Source: Macrostomum hystrix
Taxonomy: Eukaryota; Animalia; Platyhelminthes
DNA length: 64,000 nt
Direction of reading: 5' to 3'
NCBI GenBank assembly: GCA_950097015.1
Contig: CATNEN010000037.1
Location: 1,550,001 to 1,614,000, forward strand
The position numbers and the translations under genes were made by a program. The notes beneath the pieces were generated by a model, which saw nothing but the letters and a program-made list of their open reading frames with translations, did not search any database and had not been told where the DNA came from. Shown piece by piece: positions 6,290 to 54,850 of this stretch; within the stretch, counting starts at the first letter, position 1; each line of letters begins with the position of its first letter.

Positions 6290-6560
6290 AATTATAAGAT
6301 CTGTAGGATCTGCAATCATTTGGTGACAGTAGACCCTCAGCCAGCGAGGAGGCAATTCAGCGCATTCCCATGACTCCTGAGCACACACGCACACAACTAC
6401 CGTGCTTAGGCACACAATCACACAGAGCAGGTGTGTATATGACCTCCGACCTTCTCATGATCGTCAGGCAGTGTACACTCTCAGTCTTGCTGTGCCTTGG
6501 AGGTTGGCCCTCAAAGGCGTAAATTGCACGACAAGCCCCCAAGCCTTTTTCCGCAACCGC
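6290..6560 (-). mobile_element. SINE family A, copy lacking the tRNA-like head
   Basis: Shares CAGCCAGCGAGGAGGCAATTC...GACTCCTGAGCACACACGCACAC...GGAGGTTGGCCCTCAA.GGCGTAAATTGCACGACAAGCCCCCAA with the copy at 45870-46257 and, inverted, with 28593-28950. Confidence 0.8.
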
Positions 6561-7508
6561 GTTCACTGCTCTGCCACCCCTGGTAAAAGAGGTTTTGTGT
6601 TTGCTTACCTTTTTCGCTGGTCCAAGAGCTGAAATTGTCCAAGAGCCGATGAAGTTTTGATGGAAACTTTAAATAGAAACTCGAGCTAAGCAGCCAAGAA
6701 AAAAAGACCATAGACATCAGAGATTGTAATCGAGCTCTGACTGCCAGAAAAACGCACTATTCAATTGCTTTTTTTAATTGCTGGCCCAAATCAAGGACTT
6801 CTAAATAATAACTTCAATATTATCCCTGGACTGATGCTATTGTATAGAAGTCCTTGCCCAAATGCTTCAATAACACTGATTCTAGCTGGTGATTTTTTCC
6901 ATAGACATCGAGTGAGATGCTTTATCGATCGAGCAAAATGAGCATGAGAAGTGCATCAAGCCAAGGAATTCTAATTTCAGTAATTTCTGTGGTTTCAACT
7001 TCACTTTGGATGTGTGCTTGGACTTAAGCAGAAAAATCCACAGATTCTATATTACCCACATTCTATTCTATATTCCACAGGTAATATAGAATCTGTGGAA
7101 AAATCTGTCTTGCTGGAGAGGTTCGTGAAACACCACACCACAATATAACTTACTCTTTATTACACTAAATATAGCCTCTAAAGTGCACACTAATCGTCAC
7201 GATCAGCAGTTTCTGTAGGTAATGTAAAACGTTGCTTAACATACTTTACCTTATATTTACTTGCTTCTGAGTGTAAAACTGAATCAGCTTTTAATTTTAA
7301 CAAAGTATCGGCGCTGTGCATCAAAATATTTATTTCCGCTAGTGATTAGCTTCTGAAGCCAGTTTTTAGACAATAGAACAAAGTTGGTTAACATGTAGGA
7401 AACTTTGTGCCAAGGTGATATAACAAAAAAGAATGAAAATATAGCTAGATCAAGGCCATCGATATGCACAAAGGAAACACAATATTTCAAAAAACTCGGC
7501 TCAAAAAC

Positions 7509-10249: not shown

Positions 10250-10659
10250 GTTTGTTGAAGCCTGGTGCACTATAGGCTGACAACACTATGTATTTTAACC
10301 TGGAGATGTCAAACTAATGTCTCTCTGCTACATTTGCCTCGCTCTTTAACCCTCGCTCGCCAATATAGAAACTCTATGTTGTCATTAGCAACGAGAAGAG
10401 AATATAGGGAGGGGTAAGGTAAAATGAATGTACAGCTAGGAGTATAGAGGATTGAAAGTTGAGAGGACGACTGAAATTAGCTATTGTTAAGAGACCCTAG
10501 CAGTACACTTGCAGTTGTACTTACACCAAGCAAGGCAGTGTACGCTCAGATTACGTGTTTTAGATTCCCAAATATACCACATACAACTGTTAGTTGAACT
10601 CTGTAAAGAAATTGTGTAAAGGTAGATGGCTCCCAGCAGGATTCGTGTTAGGGAACAGT

Positions 10660-12030
10660 AGATGTACTGTGGGATGGGAACAGCTGATGTACTGTGGGAT
10701 GGCAGGATGGGAACAGCTGATGCACTGTGGGATGGCAGGATGGGAACAGCTGATACACTGTAGGATGGCAGGAAGGGAAACAGCTGATGCACTGTGGGAT
10801 GGGAGGATGGGAACAGCTGATGCACTGTCGGATGGGAGGATGGGAACAGCTGATGCACTGTGGGATGGGAGGATGGGAACAGCTGATGCACTGTGGGATG
10901 GGAGGATGGGAACAGCTGATACACTGTGGGATGGGAGGATGGGAACAGCTGATGCACTGTGGGATGGGAGGATGGGAACAGCTGATGCACTGTGGGATGG
11001 GAGGATGGGAACAGCTGATGCACTGTGGGATGGGAGGATGGGAACAGCTGATGCACTGTGGGATGGGAGGATGGGAACAGCTGATGCACTGTGGGATGGG
11101 AGGATGGGAACAGCTGATGCACTGTGGGATGGGAGGATGGGAACAGCTGATGCACTGTGGGATGGCAGGATGGGACAGCTGATGCACTGTGGGATGGCAG
11201 GATGGGAACAGCTGATGCACTGTGGGATGGGAGGATGGGAACAGCTGATGCACTGTGGGATGGCAGGATGGGAACAGCTGATACACTGTGGGATGGGAGG
11301 ATGGGAACAGCTGATGCACTGTGGGATGGGAGGATGGGAACAGCTGATGCACTGTGGGATGGCAGGATGGGACAGCTGATGCACTGTGGGATGGCAGGAT
11401 GGGAACAGCTGATGCACTGTGGGATGGGAGGATGGGAACAGCTGATACACTGTGGGATGGGAGGATGGGAACAGCTGATGCACTGTGGGATGGGAGGATG
11501 GGAACAGCTGATGCACTGTGGGATGGGAGGATGGGAACAGCTGATGCACTGTGGGATGGGAGGATGGGAACAGCTGATGCACTGTGGGATGGGAGGATGG
11601 GAACAGCTGATGCACTGTGGGATGGGAGGATGGGAACAGCTGATGCACTGGATGATGGCAGGATGGGAACAGCTGATGCACTGTGGGATGGGAGGATGGG
11701 AACAGCTGATGCACTGTGGGATGGCAGGATGGGACAGCTGATGCACTGTGGGATGGCAGGATGGGAACAGCTGATGCACTGTGGGATGGCAGGATGGGAA
11801 CAGCTGATACACTGTGGGATGGGAGGATGGGAACAGCTGATGCACTGTGGGATGGGAGGATGGGAACAGCTGATGCACTGTGGGATGGCAGGATGGGACA
11901 GCTGATGCACTGTGGGATGGCAGGATGGGAACAGCTGATGCACTGTGGGATGGCAGGATGGGGACAGCTGATGCACTGTGGGATAGCAGGATGGGGACAG
12001 CTAATGCATTGTAGGATGGGAGGATAAGAT
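10660..12030. repeat. 33-bp minisatellite (GGGATGGGAGGATGGGAACAGCTGATGCACTGT)
   Basis: About 40 tandem units; 11-aa period in the ORF track. Confidence 0.97.
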
Positions 12031-45252: not shown

Positions 45253-48200
45253 TCAACCTTTAAAGACATCTGGTGCCGAGAACAAAATAGCGCACGTTGC
45301 TATCAAAGTAAAACCAGAGAAAAGAATTAGACAGAGGCGATCGATTACCCTGGCTGCAAATTTCCATTCGCTGCTCACTTCACCATCGGCCACATCGTTG
45401 GCGATTTTCTTAGTGACGACGCGAAGCTCGTGAACAATGGTATCCACATCTTCCTGGGTGTCACACTCATCGTAATGTTTTGCCATCGACTCCTGCTGTT
45501 GTCTTAGGGATTCATCATTGACAGACATCTGCCTCTGTCTTTGCTGCTGCTGGAAGTCCGCGTAGGAACTCGGTGAATCCGTGACTCCGCTAGCCGCTGA
45601 TGCAGACGAGAGCTGATGTGGCAAATGTCGCAGCCGCTTCTGTATTGAAGATTGCTGCTGTTGCTGACTTAAAGATGTCAATTCGTCAAACGATGATAAA
45701 CCAGTGGAACACCTGGTGGATCATGCAATGATGAGAATCACAACCTCTGAGCATGAACTAATTCGAGTAGATTATCGAGCAGAAACTCCCAGATCTACAA
45801 ATTTTAATGACTCCGAACTAAAAAAATGCACGTACAAATGCAGCTCATAATTTCTACTTAGCTCCAGCTAATAATAATAATAATAATTGCAGGATTGAGG
45901 GCTGCGAGCAGTGGCCCATCATTTAGTGACACTACTAGACTCGCAGCCAGCGAGGAGGCAATTCTGCCCATTTCGCTGACTCCTGAGCACACACGCACAC
46001 AGATACCGTACGCAGGCACGCTCATACCGGTGTGTACAGGTGTGTACCGGCTCACACCTGACTTTCTCATCGTCAGGCAGTGTACATTTCACTCTGCCTT
46101 GGAGGTTGGCCCTCAAGGGCGTAAATTGCACGACAAGCCCCCAAATCATTCTCTCAGCGACTGCGCCCCAAATAAAAGTGGCCTCGCCGTGGAATCGAAC
46201 TTATAGGGATCGTGGTGCCGTGAGACAAACACGTTAACCGCTTTGCCACCGACCCCCTTAGCTTTAGCTATCTTCCCAATTTTTTAATTTTACCATGCCG
46301 AAATCGGAATTGAACAAGCTCTTCTGAGTTAAAGACTCAATTCTACTTATAAAGCACTATTTGAGACCCAAAAAGCGTAAAGGGTCACTAAAGTGTATAC
46401 CCTTTAAAGACATGCTGCTGCTGCTGTTGCTGTCCATACCCGCCAGCTACCGTTCTGTAGCTGTCTTCAATATCCAAGACATTCGCCAGCAGCGACTTGG
46501 AACAGCGTTCCCGCAGTTCCAGGCCAGACGCGCCCGAGCGACGCCGCAGTGGCCGCACAACGCTGCTACCGATGCCGCGCGACCATTCGCTTAGCCGACG
46601 CCGCAGACGAATCGGTTCGGTGTGCTCCGTGCGGCCGTGATGCCGCATGCAGAGGATGCTGGCCAGATAGACGCAGATAAATTTACGAATCTGCAAATTA
46701 GCCAATCGGCAGTTAAATATTGAACCATTTTCGATCCCCTCGCAATAAAAGCTTTGAAGATATTTCACAGGGCTCACCCAATTAGGTATCGGATGCGACT
46801 CAGCATTCCTGTGGTGATAGTTGAGCACTATCACGGTGAAAACCACGGATAGGCTGCACATTATCATGGTGCACGCGAAGTACATACCTGCACAATTTTT
46901 GAAGCATTTTTTACTTGTTTTTACAAAAACTGAGACGGAATATGCAATTGTTAGTCGCTATATTACAATTATTTAGAGGAATCGTAAAAAAATAATAGCA
47001 AACTAAAACAAAATCCGTTAAAAACTGCAATTACCCTCGTTGAGTAAAATAAGTATTATCGCCTGTTTATCAAATTTGGGTAACTAAATCAAAGTAATCA
47101 TTGTTGCCGGTTTAATTATTTAGTCTCACTTCAGACCAGTGACGTAACCAGGATTTTCATCTAGGGGGCCGCGCCTAATGGGGGGCGCCACTAACAGGGC
47201 GCCACTACCAGGGGGCGCCACTACCAGGGGGCGCCACTACCAAGGGGCACCACTATCAGGGGGCGCCACTACCCAGGGGGCGCCACTACCAGGGGGCGCC
47301 ACTACCAGGGGGCGCCACTACCAGGGGGCGCCACTACCAGGGAGCGACAATATCAGGGGGCGACAATATCAGGGGGCGCCACTACCAGGGGGCGCCACTA
47401 CCAGGGGGCGCCACTACCAAGGGGCACCACTACCAGGGGGCGCCACTACCAGGGGGCGCCACTACCAGGGGGCGCCACTACCAGGGGGCGCCACTACCAG
47501 GGGGCGCCACTACCAGGGGGCGCCACTACCAGGGGGCGCCACTACCAGGGGGCGCCACTACCAGGGGGCGCCACTACCAGGGGGCGCCACTACCAGGGGG
47601 CGCCACTACCAGGGGGCGCCACTACCAGGGGGTGCCACTACCAGGGAGCGCCACTACCAGGGGGCACCACTACCAGGGGGTGCCACTACCAGGGGGCGCC
47701 ACTACCAGGGGGTGCCACTACCAGGGGGCGCCACTACCAGGGGGCGCCACTACCAGGGGGTGCCACTACCAGGGGGCGCCACTACCAGGGAGCGCCACTA
47801 CTCGTACAATATGTTTGTACGAGCGCCACACTGTTTCTTCAGCCCATTCGGGGGGCCCGCGCCGGCCCCCTTGTCCCCACCTGGCCGACCTACCTATGAC
47901 AGGCACTGAATCAGAGGTGGCTGGCATGGCCTCTCCGACCATCATGAGGAATACGGTGAGCGACAGAAGAATTGTGACACCTGTGTGATTCATTTTCGTT
48001 AGTTTTTGTTAATATTTTGCTCAAGCACAATTTACTATTGTGCGAGAAGAAAAGTAGGCAAGTAAAAAATCTAAAATAAAAATTATATGGAGGTAATATC
48101 TAAAAACGTAATACTCTTCATATAACGTGTATTCTGCGAGTTAATTGTTTTGCTTTGATTGAATAATTGATATAAGGTTTGTCAAATAAGCATTATAGAC

Positions 48201-51200
48201 GCATGCACCTCGATGATCACACAGAAATTATAATAATTGCACGACAACATTCTTCATGCAATGTTCTAAATGCATGTTTTTAATTATGTTTTTAATTTAA
48301 ATGAAGTTAAATATAGACAATCCTGCAGATGCATTTGTGTAGGTTGCAATCGCTCCTGTAAAAACTCAGGCAACCCTATCGCAATTAGCCTGCAGTTGAG
48401 CACTCGCCTTACCAATTAGCGGCAGGGACTCCGATGTCTGCGGCATTGCGTCTGCCACTAGTAGCAGAAACATTATCAGCGACAATAGAATTGTCACACC
48501 TGTGCAGGCGCGAAGAAGCGGCCAAGCAATGCGAGGGTAAGCGCGCTGTTAAGATCATTCAGATAAATTCAGAATTCACTATCCTGACGATTCAGGATAC
48601 ATTGTCAGACAACCCATTAGACGAACTGTGCGTTTATGGTCAAAGTTAAACGAATGATAACAATGTTCGTGACAGCAAAAACAAATTACAGGCACATACC
48701 CAACGATATTTTCTCCCCGGCGTCCGGCGGCAAAAGGAAAGTGAGCAGTGTCATTGTGGAGATGAGCACGCAAGGTATGATTAGGTTAAAACCGTAGTAC
48801 AAGGTCCGCCGTCGAATCTTGATAAGGTATTTCAGGTCGATGAAGGGAAAGGGGCAGCAATCGTAGACTAGGGCCGTCCTCTGGCCAGGCATGCCTGCGA
48901 TGAGGGAGTGCATTTTCGGACGATTTAAACTTGCCTTCCCTGGAGAAAGTCGAGGATCGGAGGGTGTTGGTCAGTTGTGGATCGGAGGGTGTTGGTCAGT
49001 TGTGGATCGGAGGGTGTTGGTCAGTTGTGGATCGGAGGGTGTTGGTCAGTTGTGGATCGGAGGGTGTTGGTCAGTTGTGGATGGGAGGGTGTTGGTCAGT
49101 TGTGGATCGGAGGGTGTTGGTCAGTTGTGGATCGGAGGGTGTTGGTCAGTTTAGGATCGGAGGGTGTTGGTCAGTTGAGGATTGGAGGTTGTTGGTCAGT
49201 TGTGGATCGGAGGGTGTTGGTCAGTTGTGGATCGGAGGGTGTTGGTCAGTTGAGGATTGGAGGGTGTTGGTCAGTTGTGGATCGGAGGGTGTTGGTCAGT
49301 TGTGGATCGGAGGGTGTTGGTCAGTTGTGGATCGGAGGGTGTTGGTCAGTTTAGGATCGGAGGGTGTTGGTCAGTTGTGGATCGGAGGGTGTTGGTCAGT
49401 TGAGGTTGTTGGTCAGTTGTGGATCGGAGGGTGTTGGTCAGTTGTGGATCGGAGGGTGTTGGTCAGTTTAGGATCGGAGGGTGTTGGTCAGTTGTGGATC
49501 GGAGGGTGTTGGTCAGTTGTGGATCGGAGGGTGTTGGTCAGTTGAGGATCGGATGGTGTTGTTCAGTTTAGGATCGGAGGGTGTTTGTAAGTCGAGGATC
49601 GTTTAACTAAAAAAAGTTAATCGCACATTGATTCGGCACACAACAGTTGAGCATTAGTGCCAAGGATGCTGCGAAAAATATTTTTGACATGCGCAAGCGC
49701 TTTGGCTGTGCTCATTTGTGCATCTCGGCAGATATCTAAGAATAAAGAAACAAATACATGATGCGGTGCACACCGAAGACGCCCATCTCGCCATCGTCTG
49801 GCGGAATTTTGTAACCGAGGACCGAGAGAGAGGCCAGGAAGCTGCAAGGGCCCAGCATGTTGAACAGAAAGTACAACTGAGGCCTATACAAATGCGCAGG
49901 TGAAATATCAAGTAAAGCTTGCTAGTACCAGCTCGACCTGGAAGTTTGGTTGGCGTCAACCGGATCGAGATCTTGGAGCATTGGGCAAACGTAGTTTTCG
50001 ATGCTTCTGATTCAGAATATCGGTATGAATCGTTCATCGATCTAGGTGGAAGAGCTAAAAGCTGGTGTCGTCTGAAAGCTCAAGATTCAGTTTTTCTGAT
50101 CTGCATGGTGTGAATAGCTTTTGCTTTGGAAAAAATCGAAGGAACAATCGATAGGACGTGACAGACCAGCGTGAGTAGTTTGCATTTCGGGTTATACTTT
50201 TCGGGTCGACGTTTTACATTGTTACTTTGAATCGAAGTGCCTGTAACCTGATTTTAAAATACTATATTAAATTGTGACATTGTAAAAAACACAAAGATTT
50301 ACCTTCAAGATTCCACTCGCCGCTTTTTACATAGTTGGACGTGTCGCCGCTGCCGCTCTCGGTGCAGCCCTCCGGGTCGCCCAGGCGGTCCTGCACCGTT
50401 TTGAAGCTCTCGTTGGAGCATTTGAACCGAAGATCGACTGTGCCACCGTCGTAAGTCCACGAGCCGAACTTCATCAAACACTCCTGCGTATCGAACGGGA
50501 ACCAGGTGATGTCAATCTTGCAGGTGGACTTGAACATACCGGGCGGTATGTAGGTCATGAAGCCGGTGTTGTCAATCACCACGTTTGTCGGGTACGTGCC
50601 GTCGAATTTCTCGTCAGCGCTTTATGAAAAATGATCGAGCCGAGTGATTTGAAACCACACAACACTGTAGTACAAGCTACTAGTTTCCCTTCTTTATTTC
50701 TGTCTTCACTCACCTATTGTATAAGAGTACATCCGGCCGCCAGACCTTTCTTGGGTCAATGTTGATCTTAGTTATGTTTCCGAATTGCTTCGGATCCCAT
50801 TTGAAGTGATAATCTGACCATGACTACAAGCATGGGAAGCATTGTGCTCTCAAACTTATTGTATGTACGAGCGTAAATATGAGCATGCAACTCACCAAAT
50901 CTAGCCAGATGCTTGAGAATAAGATCTGGTTCTTCTCGTCCTGAAGTAAATTATGGAATTTTTTAGTTTAATTTAGTTTTGTGTATCTTGAGTTAGTCTT
51001 GGCGAGGCTTGTAGCCTACCAGCGGTTAGAGGGGGTTCGATTACCGACTCTATTGGAACAATTTGTGTCCATTAGCAAGACACTTAACTCTGCATTGCTT
51101 CAGTTCACCCAGCTGTTAAATACGTAGCAGCATTAGCTGGGGGGTAATTGAGGGTGGGTATGGCGTCCCCCCAGTCCATGGACTGAACAGCCGTTCGCAG

Positions 51201-53933
51201 CCTTCGATCAGATGCTTCGCGCAATAGCTGCGGCTGTGCTGTCAGCTGCACATCTGGCCCGATTGGGGCAGGTGTAACGAAATAATTGTTTTTATCTTTC
51301 TGCTGCATTAACAGAAAGAGCTAACAAAAAATTCTAAAATAGGTCAAAAGCTCACCACGTCTATGATCTGCTGCAGTGACACTTTGAACCAGACGTACAG
51401 AATGTCCGTATCGTTCTCAACTGGCCGTTCCATTGGATTATGCTGATTTGAGCTGTTCTCAAACAGATAGCGAAGCAGTAGTTTTTCATTTCGACCTGCA
51501 TTAACACATAGGATGCGAAATCAAACCTTATATTTAGATTTATTTCTGTTCAGATTGGTTTAAAACCAACTTCATGTGCGACACAAAAAAGTAAAATTTA
51601 TTGACCTAATTTCTGAGTTAAATAAAAACAATAATAAGGTCGCCGCCAGTCCCTCTGAATGACACAGCATCTTGCAGAATCAATATCTGAGCCATCTTAA
51701 TCCCCCAAGGCCAATCAATTTTTCTAAAGCCTTAACGCAGTGCAATGCAAATCGTTTTGCCGATTAATTTAAATGCAATATATTAATTTTTTCGAAGCAG
51801 CTCATAGCTTATCTCGTGCCACTGTCACAAGCCCGGTCACTTGTTTTATCCCTGTCTCGCAAAGATATGACCTGATTGCCCTGCGGCAGTGGCTATTGGC
51901 ATTTAGCTTTGCCAATTTACTTGCAGATCTCATTTCCCTATTGCATTTCATCCAAAAAAAGGCAACAATTTTTTGTTTAAAATGACACTGTAGTGGTTAG
52001 AACTGCTTGGGGGTTTAGTGATCAACTGCTTCACTGTGTCTACAGATGGTCCTTCACTCCTGTGTCTACAGATAGTCCTCACTCACGGTGTCTACAGATA
52101 GTCCTCACTCACGGTGTCTACAGATGGTCCTTCACTCACGGTGTCTACAGATGGTCCTTCACTCGCTGTGTCTACAGATGGTCCTTCACTCACGGTGTCT
52201 ACAGATGGTCCTTCACTCCTGTGTCTACAGATGGTCCTTCACTCCTGTGTCTACAGATGGTCCTTCACTCGCTGTGTCTACAGATGGTCCTTCACTCCTG
52301 TGTCTACAGATGGTCCTTCACTCGCTGTGTCTACAGATGGTCCTTCACTCGCTGTGTCTACAGATGGTCCTTCACTCGCTGTGTCTACAGATGGTCCTTC
52401 ACTCACGGTGTCTACAGATGGTCCTTCACTCACGGTGTCTACAGATGGTCCTTCACTCCTGTGTCTACAGATGGTCCTTCACTCACGGTGTCTACAGATG
52501 GTCCTTCACTCACGGTGTCTACAGATGGTCCTTCACTCACGGTGTCTACAGATGGTCCTTCACTCACGGTGTCTACAGATGGTCCTTCACTCACTGTGTC
52601 TACAGATGGTCCTTCACTCACGGTGTCTACAGATGGTCCTTCACTCACGGTGTCTACAGATGGTCCTTCACTCGCTGTGTCTACAGATGGTCCTTCACTC
52701 ACTGTGTCTACAGATGGTCCTTCACTCACGGTGTCTACAGATGGTCCTTAACTTTTCTAAACTGTCTACAGATGGTCCCTAAATTGCCTCAGCATTTGGA
52801 TCGAATGCAACTCTCACAATAAATTTGAGATGCTTTCCAATTTAGGCGGTCCAAGTTAGCGACAGTTTATCATCCTTTAAAGATGCAGTTCAAGCAGCAA
52901 CAGCACCGGTCAACTCATCAGAACGCAACAGTCCGCGAAATCCATAAATGTCCTCGAGTTTTCAGTTTAAACGAAATCAGCCAGCATTCTTCCATGCTGC
53001 TGGTGCATGAAATTTTCCTAACAAACAACACATGGGAGACAAATTGGCCCTATTTAGTCCTCTGCAGCTGTCAACAGAACGGCCACGCCAGACTCATTGA
53101 TCGCTGAGAAAAGCCATCGATCTCACTAATTTCACAAAACTCGAGTGGTTTGTGGAGCAGAAATCGAACTCAATCTGTACTAAGAAGCTTGGCGACACTA
53201 CTAGGTCGGTAATTTAGCACGTCCAAACTGGTGAGAAATGGAAGCTTGAGCAGGAGGCGAAATATGAAACAATTCTGAAACTTCGTTACCGCGTATTGTT
53301 GCCACATGGCTAATAACCAGTTTCCATAGAAACTATTTATTGAGCACCTTGAATGATTTGTTGATGCGGTTGTGTAAAATTTATATTACAAGGATTGGAC
53401 TGTCGAGTTTGTGTATTAGGGTGTGGGATTATGGATTATGATGTGGGATTGAGGATTATGGTGTGGGATTGAGGATTATGGTGTGGGGTTGTGGATTAAT
53501 GTGTAGGATTGTGGATTATGGTGTGGGATTGTGGATTAATGTGTAGGATTGTGGATTAAAGTGTGGGATTGTGGATTAATGTGTGGGATTGTGGATTAAT
53601 GTGTGGGGTTGTGGATTAATGTGTGGGGTTGTGGATTAAAGTGTGGGATTGTGGATTAATGTGTTGGATTGTGGATTATGGTGTGGGATTATGGATTAGG
53701 GTGTGGGATTGAGGTTTAGAGTGTGGGGTTGCAGATCGTATTTCGGATTATAGAAGCCTTGTTACTGTAAGCTCGATAAGCACTTGAATTTCGCATTTTG
53801 ATTGGCCCTGGGGTTTTTGTTGCAAATCACTGTCTTCCCTCGCGGTCTCACCTGATGCCACCGCTGCCACTAGAAGCAGTCCTAGCAGAAGAAGCCAGTT
53901 GATTGACTCTGACAAAACCGCGTGTTTCTGCAT
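45253..53933 (-). CDS. Nicotinic acetylcholine receptor alpha subunit, alpha7-like (611 aa using one M2 exon)
   Basis: Exons 53933-53852 (signal peptide), 51495-51356, 50940-50896, 50823-50714, 50619-50303, 48894-48700, [48499-48413 or 47980-47894], 46887-46778, 46690-46401 and 45712-45253. All GT-AG with consistent phases. Cys-loop [15 protein letters not shown], loop B WTYDG, loop [17 protein letters not shown]4 [14 protein letters not shown]. Confidence 0.93.
45870..46257 (-). mobile_element. tRNA-derived SINE family A, full-length, in the last nAChR intron
   Basis: Reverse-strand head GGGGGTCGGTGGCAAAGCGGTTAACG...AAGTTCGATTCCACGGCGAGGCC, family A body, and an (ATT)n tail. Confidence 0.8.
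47190..47800. repeat. 16-bp GC-rich minisatellite (CCACTACCAGGGGGCG)
   Basis: About 38 tandem units in the intron downstream of the second M2 exon. Confidence 0.97.
47894..47980 (-). CDS. nAChR M2 exon, variant b (87 nt)
   Basis: ACACAG|GT GTC ACA...GTC ATA G|GTAGGT, encoding (G)[28 protein letters not shown](G). Confidence 0.88.
48413..48499 (-). CDS. nAChR M2 exon, variant a (87 nt)
   Basis: GCACAG|GT GTG ACA...CTA ATT G|GTAAGG, encoding (G)[28 protein letters not shown](G). Not present in the ORF track. Confidence 0.85.
48955..49590. repeat. 25-bp minisatellite (GGATCGGAGGGTGTTGGTCAGTTGT)
   Basis: About 25 tandem units, intronic. Confidence 0.97.
51006..51280 (+). mobile_element. SINE family B copy with a partly deleted head
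   Basis: GTGTCCATTAGCAAGACACTTAACTCTGCATTGCTTCAGTTCACCCAGCTGTTAAAT and a 3' body nearly identical to 20870-21010. Confidence 0.8.
52030..52780. repeat. 27/26-bp minisatellite (GTGTCTACAGATGGTCCTTCACTCACG)
   Basis: Tandem units; 9-aa period in the ORF track. Confidence 0.97.
53415..53730. repeat. 20-bp minisatellite (GTGTGGGATTGTGGATTAAT)
   Basis: Tandem units in nAChR intron 1. Confidence 0.93.
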
Positions 53934-54299: not shown

Positions 54300-54850
54300 G
54301 GAATAGGAAATTTAGGGAAGAGAAAGGAATGAAGGGAAGAAAAAGGAATGAAGGGAAGAGAAAGGAATGAAGAGAAGAGAAAGGGATGAAGGGAAGAGAA
54401 AGAAAAGAAGGGAAGAGAAAGGAATGAAGGGAAGAGAAAGGAATGAAGGGAAGTGAAAGGAATGAAGGGAAGTGAAAGGAATGAAGAGAAGAGAAAGGAA
54501 TGAAGAGAAGAGAAAGGGATGAAGAGAAGAGAAAGAAAAGAAGGGAAGAGAAAGAAAAGAAGGGAAGAGAAAGAAAAGAAGGGAAGAGAAAGAAAAGAAG
54601 GGAAGAGAAAGGAATGAAGGGAAGAGAAAGGTATGAAGGGAAGTGAAAGGAATGAAGGGAAGAGAAAGGAATGAAGGGAAGAGAAAGGGATGAAGGGAAG
54701 AGAAAGGAAAGAAGGGAAGAGATAGGAAAGAAGGGAATGGAAAGGAAATAAAGGGAGGGAAGGGAAATGAAGGCAAGGGAAATTAAGGGAAGGGAAATGA
54801 AGGGAAAGAAAATGACGGAAGGGAAAAGGGAAATTAGGAAAGGGAGATGA
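54300..54850. repeat. Purine-only tandem repeat, about 19-bp unit (GAAGGGAAGAGAAAGGAAT)
   Basis: Long, almost pure purine tract upstream of the nAChR start. Confidence 0.93.

Follow-up and report, generated by a model that had tools for sequence, protein, structure and literature searches.

A swap of the pore-lining helix is the most direct route by which one gene could give rise to two channels that differ in gating, desensitization, and Ca2+ permeability, and until now a device of this kind, built on the exon for the second transmembrane segment (M2), has been documented for the alpha6 nicotinic acetylcholine receptor (nAChR) of insects. Exon 8 of insect alpha6 is an 87-nucleotide (nt) segment encoding M2 and the M2-M3 loop (PMC1919356), and its variants were found by reverse transcription-PCR to be used one at a time (PMC1919356; PMC6393475). 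In alpha7, residues L247, V251, L254, and L255 (M2 positions 9′, 13′, 16′, and 17′) change desensitization, residues E237, L254, and L255 set Ca2+ permeability, and the stretch AEIMPATSDS matters for allosteric modulation (PMC4959957). A search of the available literature found no description of alternative exons for M2 in the nAChRs of flatworms or other spiralians. Here we analyze a stretch of 64,000 nt from the flatworm Macrostomum hystrix (assembly GCA_950097015.1, contig CATNEN010000037.1, positions 1,550,001 to 1,614,000 of the forward strand), which we call the window and to which window coordinates refer. An original prediction, made from the letters of the window, had proposed that an alpha7-like nAChR gene carries two tandem, mutually exclusive exons for M2, here called 8a and 8b. 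The sequence indicates that the window gene very probably can make two channel versions from this exon pair.

The pore cassette of the window gene is composed of the following features:

48700-48894, minus strand: 195-nt exon 7b; encodes loop C (YDCC), the pre-M1 segment, M1, and the GEK ring; upstream constitutive partner
48413-48499, minus strand: exon 8a, 87 nt; M2 helix from 5′ to 20′ and the M2-M3 loop, flatworm a-type
47981-48412, minus strand: intron between 8a and 8b, 432 nt
47894-47980, minus strand: exon 8b, 87 nt; alternative M2 and M2-M3 loop, canonical alpha7 type
46888-47893, minus strand: intron between 8b and exon 9; contains a 16-nt minisatellite at 47181-47801, about 39 copies
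46778-46887, minus strand: exon 9, 110 nt; M3; downstream constitutive partner

Re-reading of the minus strand reproduced exactly the two tandem 87-nt exons, their canonical splice sites, phase 1/1, the 432-nt spacing, and the translations of both variants that the original prediction had given. AG lies directly before each exon and GT directly after it, and the phase is such that 2 nt finish a Gly codon and 1 nt opens the next codon. The flanking junctions, predicted at 48700 and 46887, fit the donor GTATGT at the end of exon 7b and the AG that lies directly before the start of exon 9. The two exons match each other far beyond chance in a tblastn comparison within the window (E, ~9e-9), with 18 of 28 residues and ~63% of bases identical. 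The residues that differ lie at M2 positions 12′, 13′, 16′, 17′, 19′, and 20′, numbered correctly in the prediction, and in the M2-M3 loop. Exon 8a is marked by Ile12′, Met13′, Asp20′, and a PQTSE loop, and exon 8b is marked by Thr12′, Val13′, Glu20′, and the sequence MPATSDS exactly as in vertebrate alpha7; the pairs are thus Met/Val at 13′, Leu-Leu/Met-Met at 16′-17′, and Asp/Glu at 20′. Tandem, homologous, equal in length and phase, and each with its own splice sites, 8a and 8b have the anatomy of a cluster of mutually exclusive exons.

The ancestral 87-nt M2 exon is thus present as two tandem diverged copies, of which each mRNA most likely takes one. The resulting two subunits would share the ligand-binding domain, M1, M3, and M4, and the differences between them would fall in the upper half of the pore and the gating loop between M2 and M3. 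Exon 8a would supply a flatworm-specific pore, and exon 8b would supply the canonical alpha7-like pore.

The identity of the gene was supported by Pfam domains and homologs. Pfam detected PF02931 (Neur_chan_LBD) on 50582-50262 (E, 5e-21) and PF02932 (Neur_chan_memb) on exon 7b, exon 9, and the exon for M4. Exon 7b encodes the vicinal cysteines (YDCC) in loop C that are indicative of an alpha subunit, as well as a cation-type intermediate ring (GEK) before M2. Homologs were collected by a full HMMER scan with the Cys-loop exon followed by word-indexed searches, and the top matches across phyla were proteins named alpha-7 or ACR-16. The closest relatives were alpha7-like proteins of Macrostomum lignano, the best of which was P0155 together with its cluster. 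Identity to P0155 was 92% in the Cys-loop exon, 93% in exon 7b, 100% (28/28) in 8a, and 97% (27/28) in 8b and fell to just 57-60% in the intracellular loop; no database protein identical to the window gene was found. The lengths of exons 7b, 8, and 9 (195, 87, and 110 nt) are common to the relatives. The human CHRNA7 gene presumably shares the same 195/87/110-nt exon structure, and we take its exon 8 to be the equivalent of the 87-nt M2 exon in the window. We conclude from the domains and homologs that the window gene is, as originally assigned, an alpha7-like nicotinic receptor alpha subunit of a Macrostomum flatworm.

To place the exons in an evolutionary context, the window was compared with M. 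lignano loci L001 (NIVC01002951), L003 (NIVC01004192, a near-identical copy of L001), and L002 (NIVC01004712). L001 and L003 have the exon order 7a-7b-8a-8b-9, in which 7a is an alternative exon for loop C and M1; none of the copies is disrupted, and 8a and 8b are each 87 nt long and bounded by AG and GT. The introns of the window and L001 could not be aligned and conserved intronic blocks were not found between the two, and the divergence is therefore old. Nei-Gojobori counts of synonymous (pS) and nonsynonymous (pN) differences between the window and L001 gave the following values:

8b against L001 8b: pS 0.72, pN 0.09, Fisher test p 5e-8
8a against L001 8a: pS 0.40, pN 0.09, Fisher test p 0.0016
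7b against L001 7b: pS 0.70, pN 0.11
exon 9 against L001 exon 9: pS 0.67, pN 0.05

The pN/pS ratio was 0.12 for 8b and 0.22 for 8a. Moreover, window 8b contains no stop and no indel, has intact AG and GT boundaries, and shows no derived amino acid change relative to other 8b copies, as the single residue at which it differs from P0155 is derived in P0155. We conclude that both exon 8 copies are under purifying selection and that the constraint on 8b matches that on the constitutive exons.

The same gene contains an exon that was not maintained:

49774-49937 (about), minus strand: decayed remnant of 7a, the alternative exon for loop C and M1; interrupted by an in-frame TAG, missing ~17 codons (YDCC among them), and no longer divisible by 3 in length

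The decayed 7a retains 64% identity to 7a of the P0155 cluster over 39 alignable residues, and its surviving part had a pN of 0.26 against L001 7a, compared to 0.05 for the same columns of 7b. The AG acceptor and GT donor are still present, but inclusion of the exon would truncate the protein. Exon 7a is intact in L001, L003, and the P0155 cluster, and the window copy lost 7a alone. Because it lies in the same gene, the decayed 7a serves as a negative control for the constraint on 8b, and the window copy amounts to a natural experiment in which one cassette member, 7a, died and the neighboring 8a and 8b were kept.

Models that derive from transcripts are available for a paralog. The GenBank Mlig_3_7 (BOX15) models come from a genome-guided transcriptome assembly (PMC5730564), and two of them, P0157 and P0158, have the order 7b-8a-9 even though the loci concerned (L001 and L003) also contain 7a and 8b. 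The models indicate that, in that paralog at least, 8b is skipped when 8a is used. A different combination, 7a to 8b to exon 9, is proposed for another paralog by the UniProt models P0159 and P0403. When the 7a-8b-9 piece of P0159 was searched against the protein collection, only relatives with at most 63% identity and no Macrostomum transcript fragments were retrieved.

The UniProt models present one M. lignano paralog as 7a+8b only, and paralog L002 contains 7b and 8a only in its genomic sequence, 7a and 8b having been lost. The arrangement looks like one in which alternative isoforms have been partitioned among gene duplicates, and it hints that 7a pairs with 8b and 7b pairs with 8a. One possibility is that the cassettes 7a/7b and 8a/8b were chosen coordinately, as 7a+8b and 7b+8a, and were later partitioned among paralogs. 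L002 also harbors, in the intron just upstream of 8a (L002:9985-10107), repeated copies of the first ~20 nt of the exon and its acceptor context, which constitute a small exon-derived tandem repeat.

Mutually exclusive use of 8a and 8b is the most likely reading of the window gene, and we hold it to be probable. We infer exclusivity because of the topology of the pair, the selection on both copies, and the transcript-based models of the paralog, and we likewise infer that 8b is used in the window gene. Several points weigh against exclusive use of two functional exons. First, 87 is a multiple of 3, such that an mRNA with both exons, or with neither, would keep its reading frame and escape nonsense-mediated decay (NMD). 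Second, the acceptor of 8b has a CTAAC match to the branch point but then a purine-rich, weak polypyrimidine tract. Third, 8b was lost in paralog L002 and in the Schistosoma locus L004 (see below), making it the dispensable member of the pair. Fourth, 7a, the alternative exon of the neighboring cassette, has already died in this gene copy. Finally, the pS and pN values given above are averages over both lineages since the paralogs split, and a very recent loss of use could escape them.

One alternative is that 8b is an intact relic that is no longer spliced in and that the gene makes the 7b+8a subunit only. The death of 7a in the window copy, the disappearance of 8b from L002 and Schistosoma, and the weak 8b acceptor would all fit a relic, as would the facts that the sole transcript-based models available, which come from the paralog, use 8a and that P0159 and P0403 pair 8b with 7a, the very exon that is dead here. 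However, 7a gained a stop, a deletion, and a pN of 0.26 over the same divergence in which 8b acquired no stop, no indel, and no derived amino acid change, kept its AG and GT, and had a pN of 0.09 equal to that of 8a. We therefore consider it unlikely that 8b is a relic.

The weakest alternative, that both exons are routinely co-included or that the choice is not exclusive, is compatible with the reading frame (87 = 3 × 29), with the UniProt models P0155, P0153, and P0402, which hold 8a followed by 8b, and with many arthropod RefSeq and other models in which two or three consecutive M2 copies appear, but we regard it as very improbable: P0153 reads through the 8a-8b intron, which marks a prediction artifact and makes the concatenated models look like artifacts; the transcript-based P0157 and P0158 skip 8b; selection keeps each copy a complete M2 of the same length and phase; and in a pentameric ligand-gated channel, an additional M2 would leave M3 and M4 with inverted topology.

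If 8a and 8b are used in a mutually exclusive manner, the choice could be enforced in a number of ways. Steric exclusion is unlikely, as the intron between the exons is 432 nt. Incompatibility between U12 and U2 splice sites was rejected, as the donors of 8a and 8b (GTAAGG and GTAGGT) are both U2-type, and a frameshift/NMD filter was rejected because 87 is a multiple of 3. Pairing between docking and selector sequences was sought in an intron-intron scan, in which the best inverted-repeat stems were 16 to 17 nt at 75 to 76% complementarity, and ungapped pairing between introns scored at or below dinucleotide-shuffled controls both in the window and in L001. We conclude that control by RNA pairing of the Dscam type is unsupported here, which leaves splice-site competition or trans-acting factors that act on the weak 8b acceptor. 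Since 8a has a good polypyrimidine tract and 8b has a weak one, we speculate that 8a is the default exon and that 8b requires activation.

The original prediction had named positions 13′, 16′, and 17′ as determinants of desensitization and Ca2+ permeability in alpha7, and the literature bears this out (PMC4959957). Because the positions that govern these properties in alpha7 are among those at which 8a and 8b differ, the isoforms would be expected to differ as well. It is a reasonable expectation, by analogy with alpha7, that the two isoforms would be distinguished by gating kinetics and divalent permeability. In the paralogs L001 and L003, the combination of 7a/7b with 8a/8b would allow four products, and the window gene could make at most two, 7b+8a and 7b+8b.

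To determine the age of the pair within flatworms, trees were built from whole proteins and from the exon itself. In a whole-protein tree from which the exon 7 and exon 8 columns had been removed, the five Macrostomum paralogs formed one clade with the trematodes as sister, and the flatworm clade (100/99) nested among spiralian alpha7-like genes. In a tree of the 28 exon columns, Macrostomum 8a grouped with the single trematode exon 8 (84/78), and the 8b exons sat with the canonical alpha7-type M2. Met13′, found in 5 of 73 distinct M2 segments retrieved, was confined to flatworm sequences. The claim that a Met at 13′ is unusual therefore holds among alpha7-like proteins generally but not within flatworms, where the residue is a conserved hallmark of the a-type, trematodes included.

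The gene of Schistosoma haematobium (L004) resembles the window gene in that its 87-nt exon 8 is of the a-type (Met13′, Asp20′, PQTSEA) but differs in that this exon is single and is accompanied by one exon 7, which is b-like, such that the gene is fixed as 7b+8a. Neither a second, 8b-like exon 8 nor a 7a-like exon was detectable in the 72-kb L004 locus even at an E value of 100. Since the a-type is the sole M2 exon of trematodes and 8b is canonical, the pair probably predates the split between Macrostomum and flukes. We think it likely that both exon types existed before that split, that flukes lost 8b and 7a, and that L002 lost the same two exons independently. In this history, the a-exon would be the standard flatworm pore, and the Met13′/Asp20′ pore of flukes would be one half of an old alternative pair rather than a fluke oddity, which is useful context for the pharmacology of flatworm nAChRs.

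Tandem M2 exons are also found beyond flatworms. The original prediction had drawn a parallel to exon 8 of insect alpha6, and the parallel holds: the segment is the same (PMC1919356), and in insect models the tandem M2 copies are spaced by 29 residues. Protein models that repeat M2 two to four times at exactly this interval are common and were found for insect alpha6/alpha7, barnacles, an ostracod, a copepod, ticks, and a mite. In the brachiopod Lingula anatina, an alpha7 gene (L006, LFEI02000065) contains genomic tandem 87-nt M2 exons at 10415-10498 and 11235-11318, which differ by one residue (Pro/Glu at 24′) and at 13 of ~23 synonymous sites (pS 0.57, pN 0.03). Lingula thereby joins Macrostomum as a spiralian candidate for the alternative use of pore exons. 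An alpha7-like gene of the annelid Capitella teleta (L005, KB312450) has a single exon 8 together with tandem loop C/M1 exons at 6428-6613 and 6770-6961, one 7a-like and the other 7b-like. Two consecutive exons of the exon 7 type are also present in several alpha7 models of polyneopteran insects. The pairing of exon 7 may have an earlier origin and a wider distribution than that of exon 8.

Two origins of the 8a/8b pair were considered, and approximately unbiased (AU) tests on the 28-column exon alignment rejected neither (p 0.17 and 0.23). Independent, recurrent duplication of the 87-nt exon is the better-supported origin and is favored because the order of the exons is reversed relative to arthropods. 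The alternative is that an a/b pair (AD..PQTSE versus VAE..P.TSD) was already present in the protostome ancestor and is orthologous to the exon 8 variants of arthropod alpha6/alpha7. If so, the pair would survive in Macrostomum and in the arthropod arrays, and the lineages with a single exon, flukes included, would be secondary losses. Consistent with a protostome origin, the a-type shares Asp20′, Gln24′, and Glu27′ (AD..PQTSE) with the fourth M2 variant of alpha7 in hemimetabolous insects, and the 28-column tree places the a-type with that variant and with alpha6 8c, albeit with weak support (81/76). The AU test did not reject a single flatworm clade of a and b exons (p 0.17), however, and in the flatworm gene the derived type precedes the canonical type, opposite to the order in arthropod arrays. 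Moreover, the Capitella locus has one exon 8, protein models of a nemertean, a mollusc, and Owenia have one M2, and the Lingula pair is nearly identical and lineage specific. A protostome origin is thus doubtful, and we favor independent duplication.

The remainder of the gene was traced by Pfam and by tblastn searches of the window with P0155 and P0151. All of its exons are open, as follows:

45256-51520, minus strand: extent of the remaining traceable gene
~51520-51356, 50940-50896, 50823-50716, and 50621-50301 (Cys-loop), minus strand: upstream exons
~46690-46451 and 45705-45256 (M4 and stop), minus strand: downstream exons

These searches did not locate the exon for the signal peptide. The intron that follows exon 9 (46691-46777, minus strand) appears to be ~87 nt, in frame, and stop-free, lying within an open reading frame that spans 46388-46885; its retention would add ~29 residues after M3 without truncation. 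The introns of the receptor gene and the region upstream of it also contain five minisatellites, at 47181-47801, 48954-49601, 52031-52753, 53409-53731, and 54314-54782, with units of 16, 25, 27, 20/40, and 19 nt, respectively. All five are long and very regular, with 16 to 39 copies, and the first, located between 8b and exon 9, would hamper the mapping of reads across that intron.

Among known systems, exon 8 of insect alpha6 is the precedent for the flatworm pair. Like the Dscam1 docking-site/selector system, the window gene has tandem homologous exons to be used one at a time, but it differs in that RNA pairing above shuffled controls was not found in either the window or L001. With exons 8a, 8b, and 8c of insect Dalpha6, several features are shared: the gene belongs to the same alpha7-like family, the exon is the same 87-nt unit of M2 and the M2-M3 loop, and the copies are tandem and equal in length and phase. 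That both copies are intact and under selection in a basal flatworm indicates that this exon has been duplicated repeatedly in protostome alpha7-like genes. The two systems belong to different phyla and differ in that insects have two or three copies and Macrostomum has two and in that the derived flatworm copy precedes the canonical one, in contrast to the insect order. Finally, the exon 3a/3b cluster of insects is single copy here, and the flatworm family has the loop C/M1 pair 7a/7b instead.

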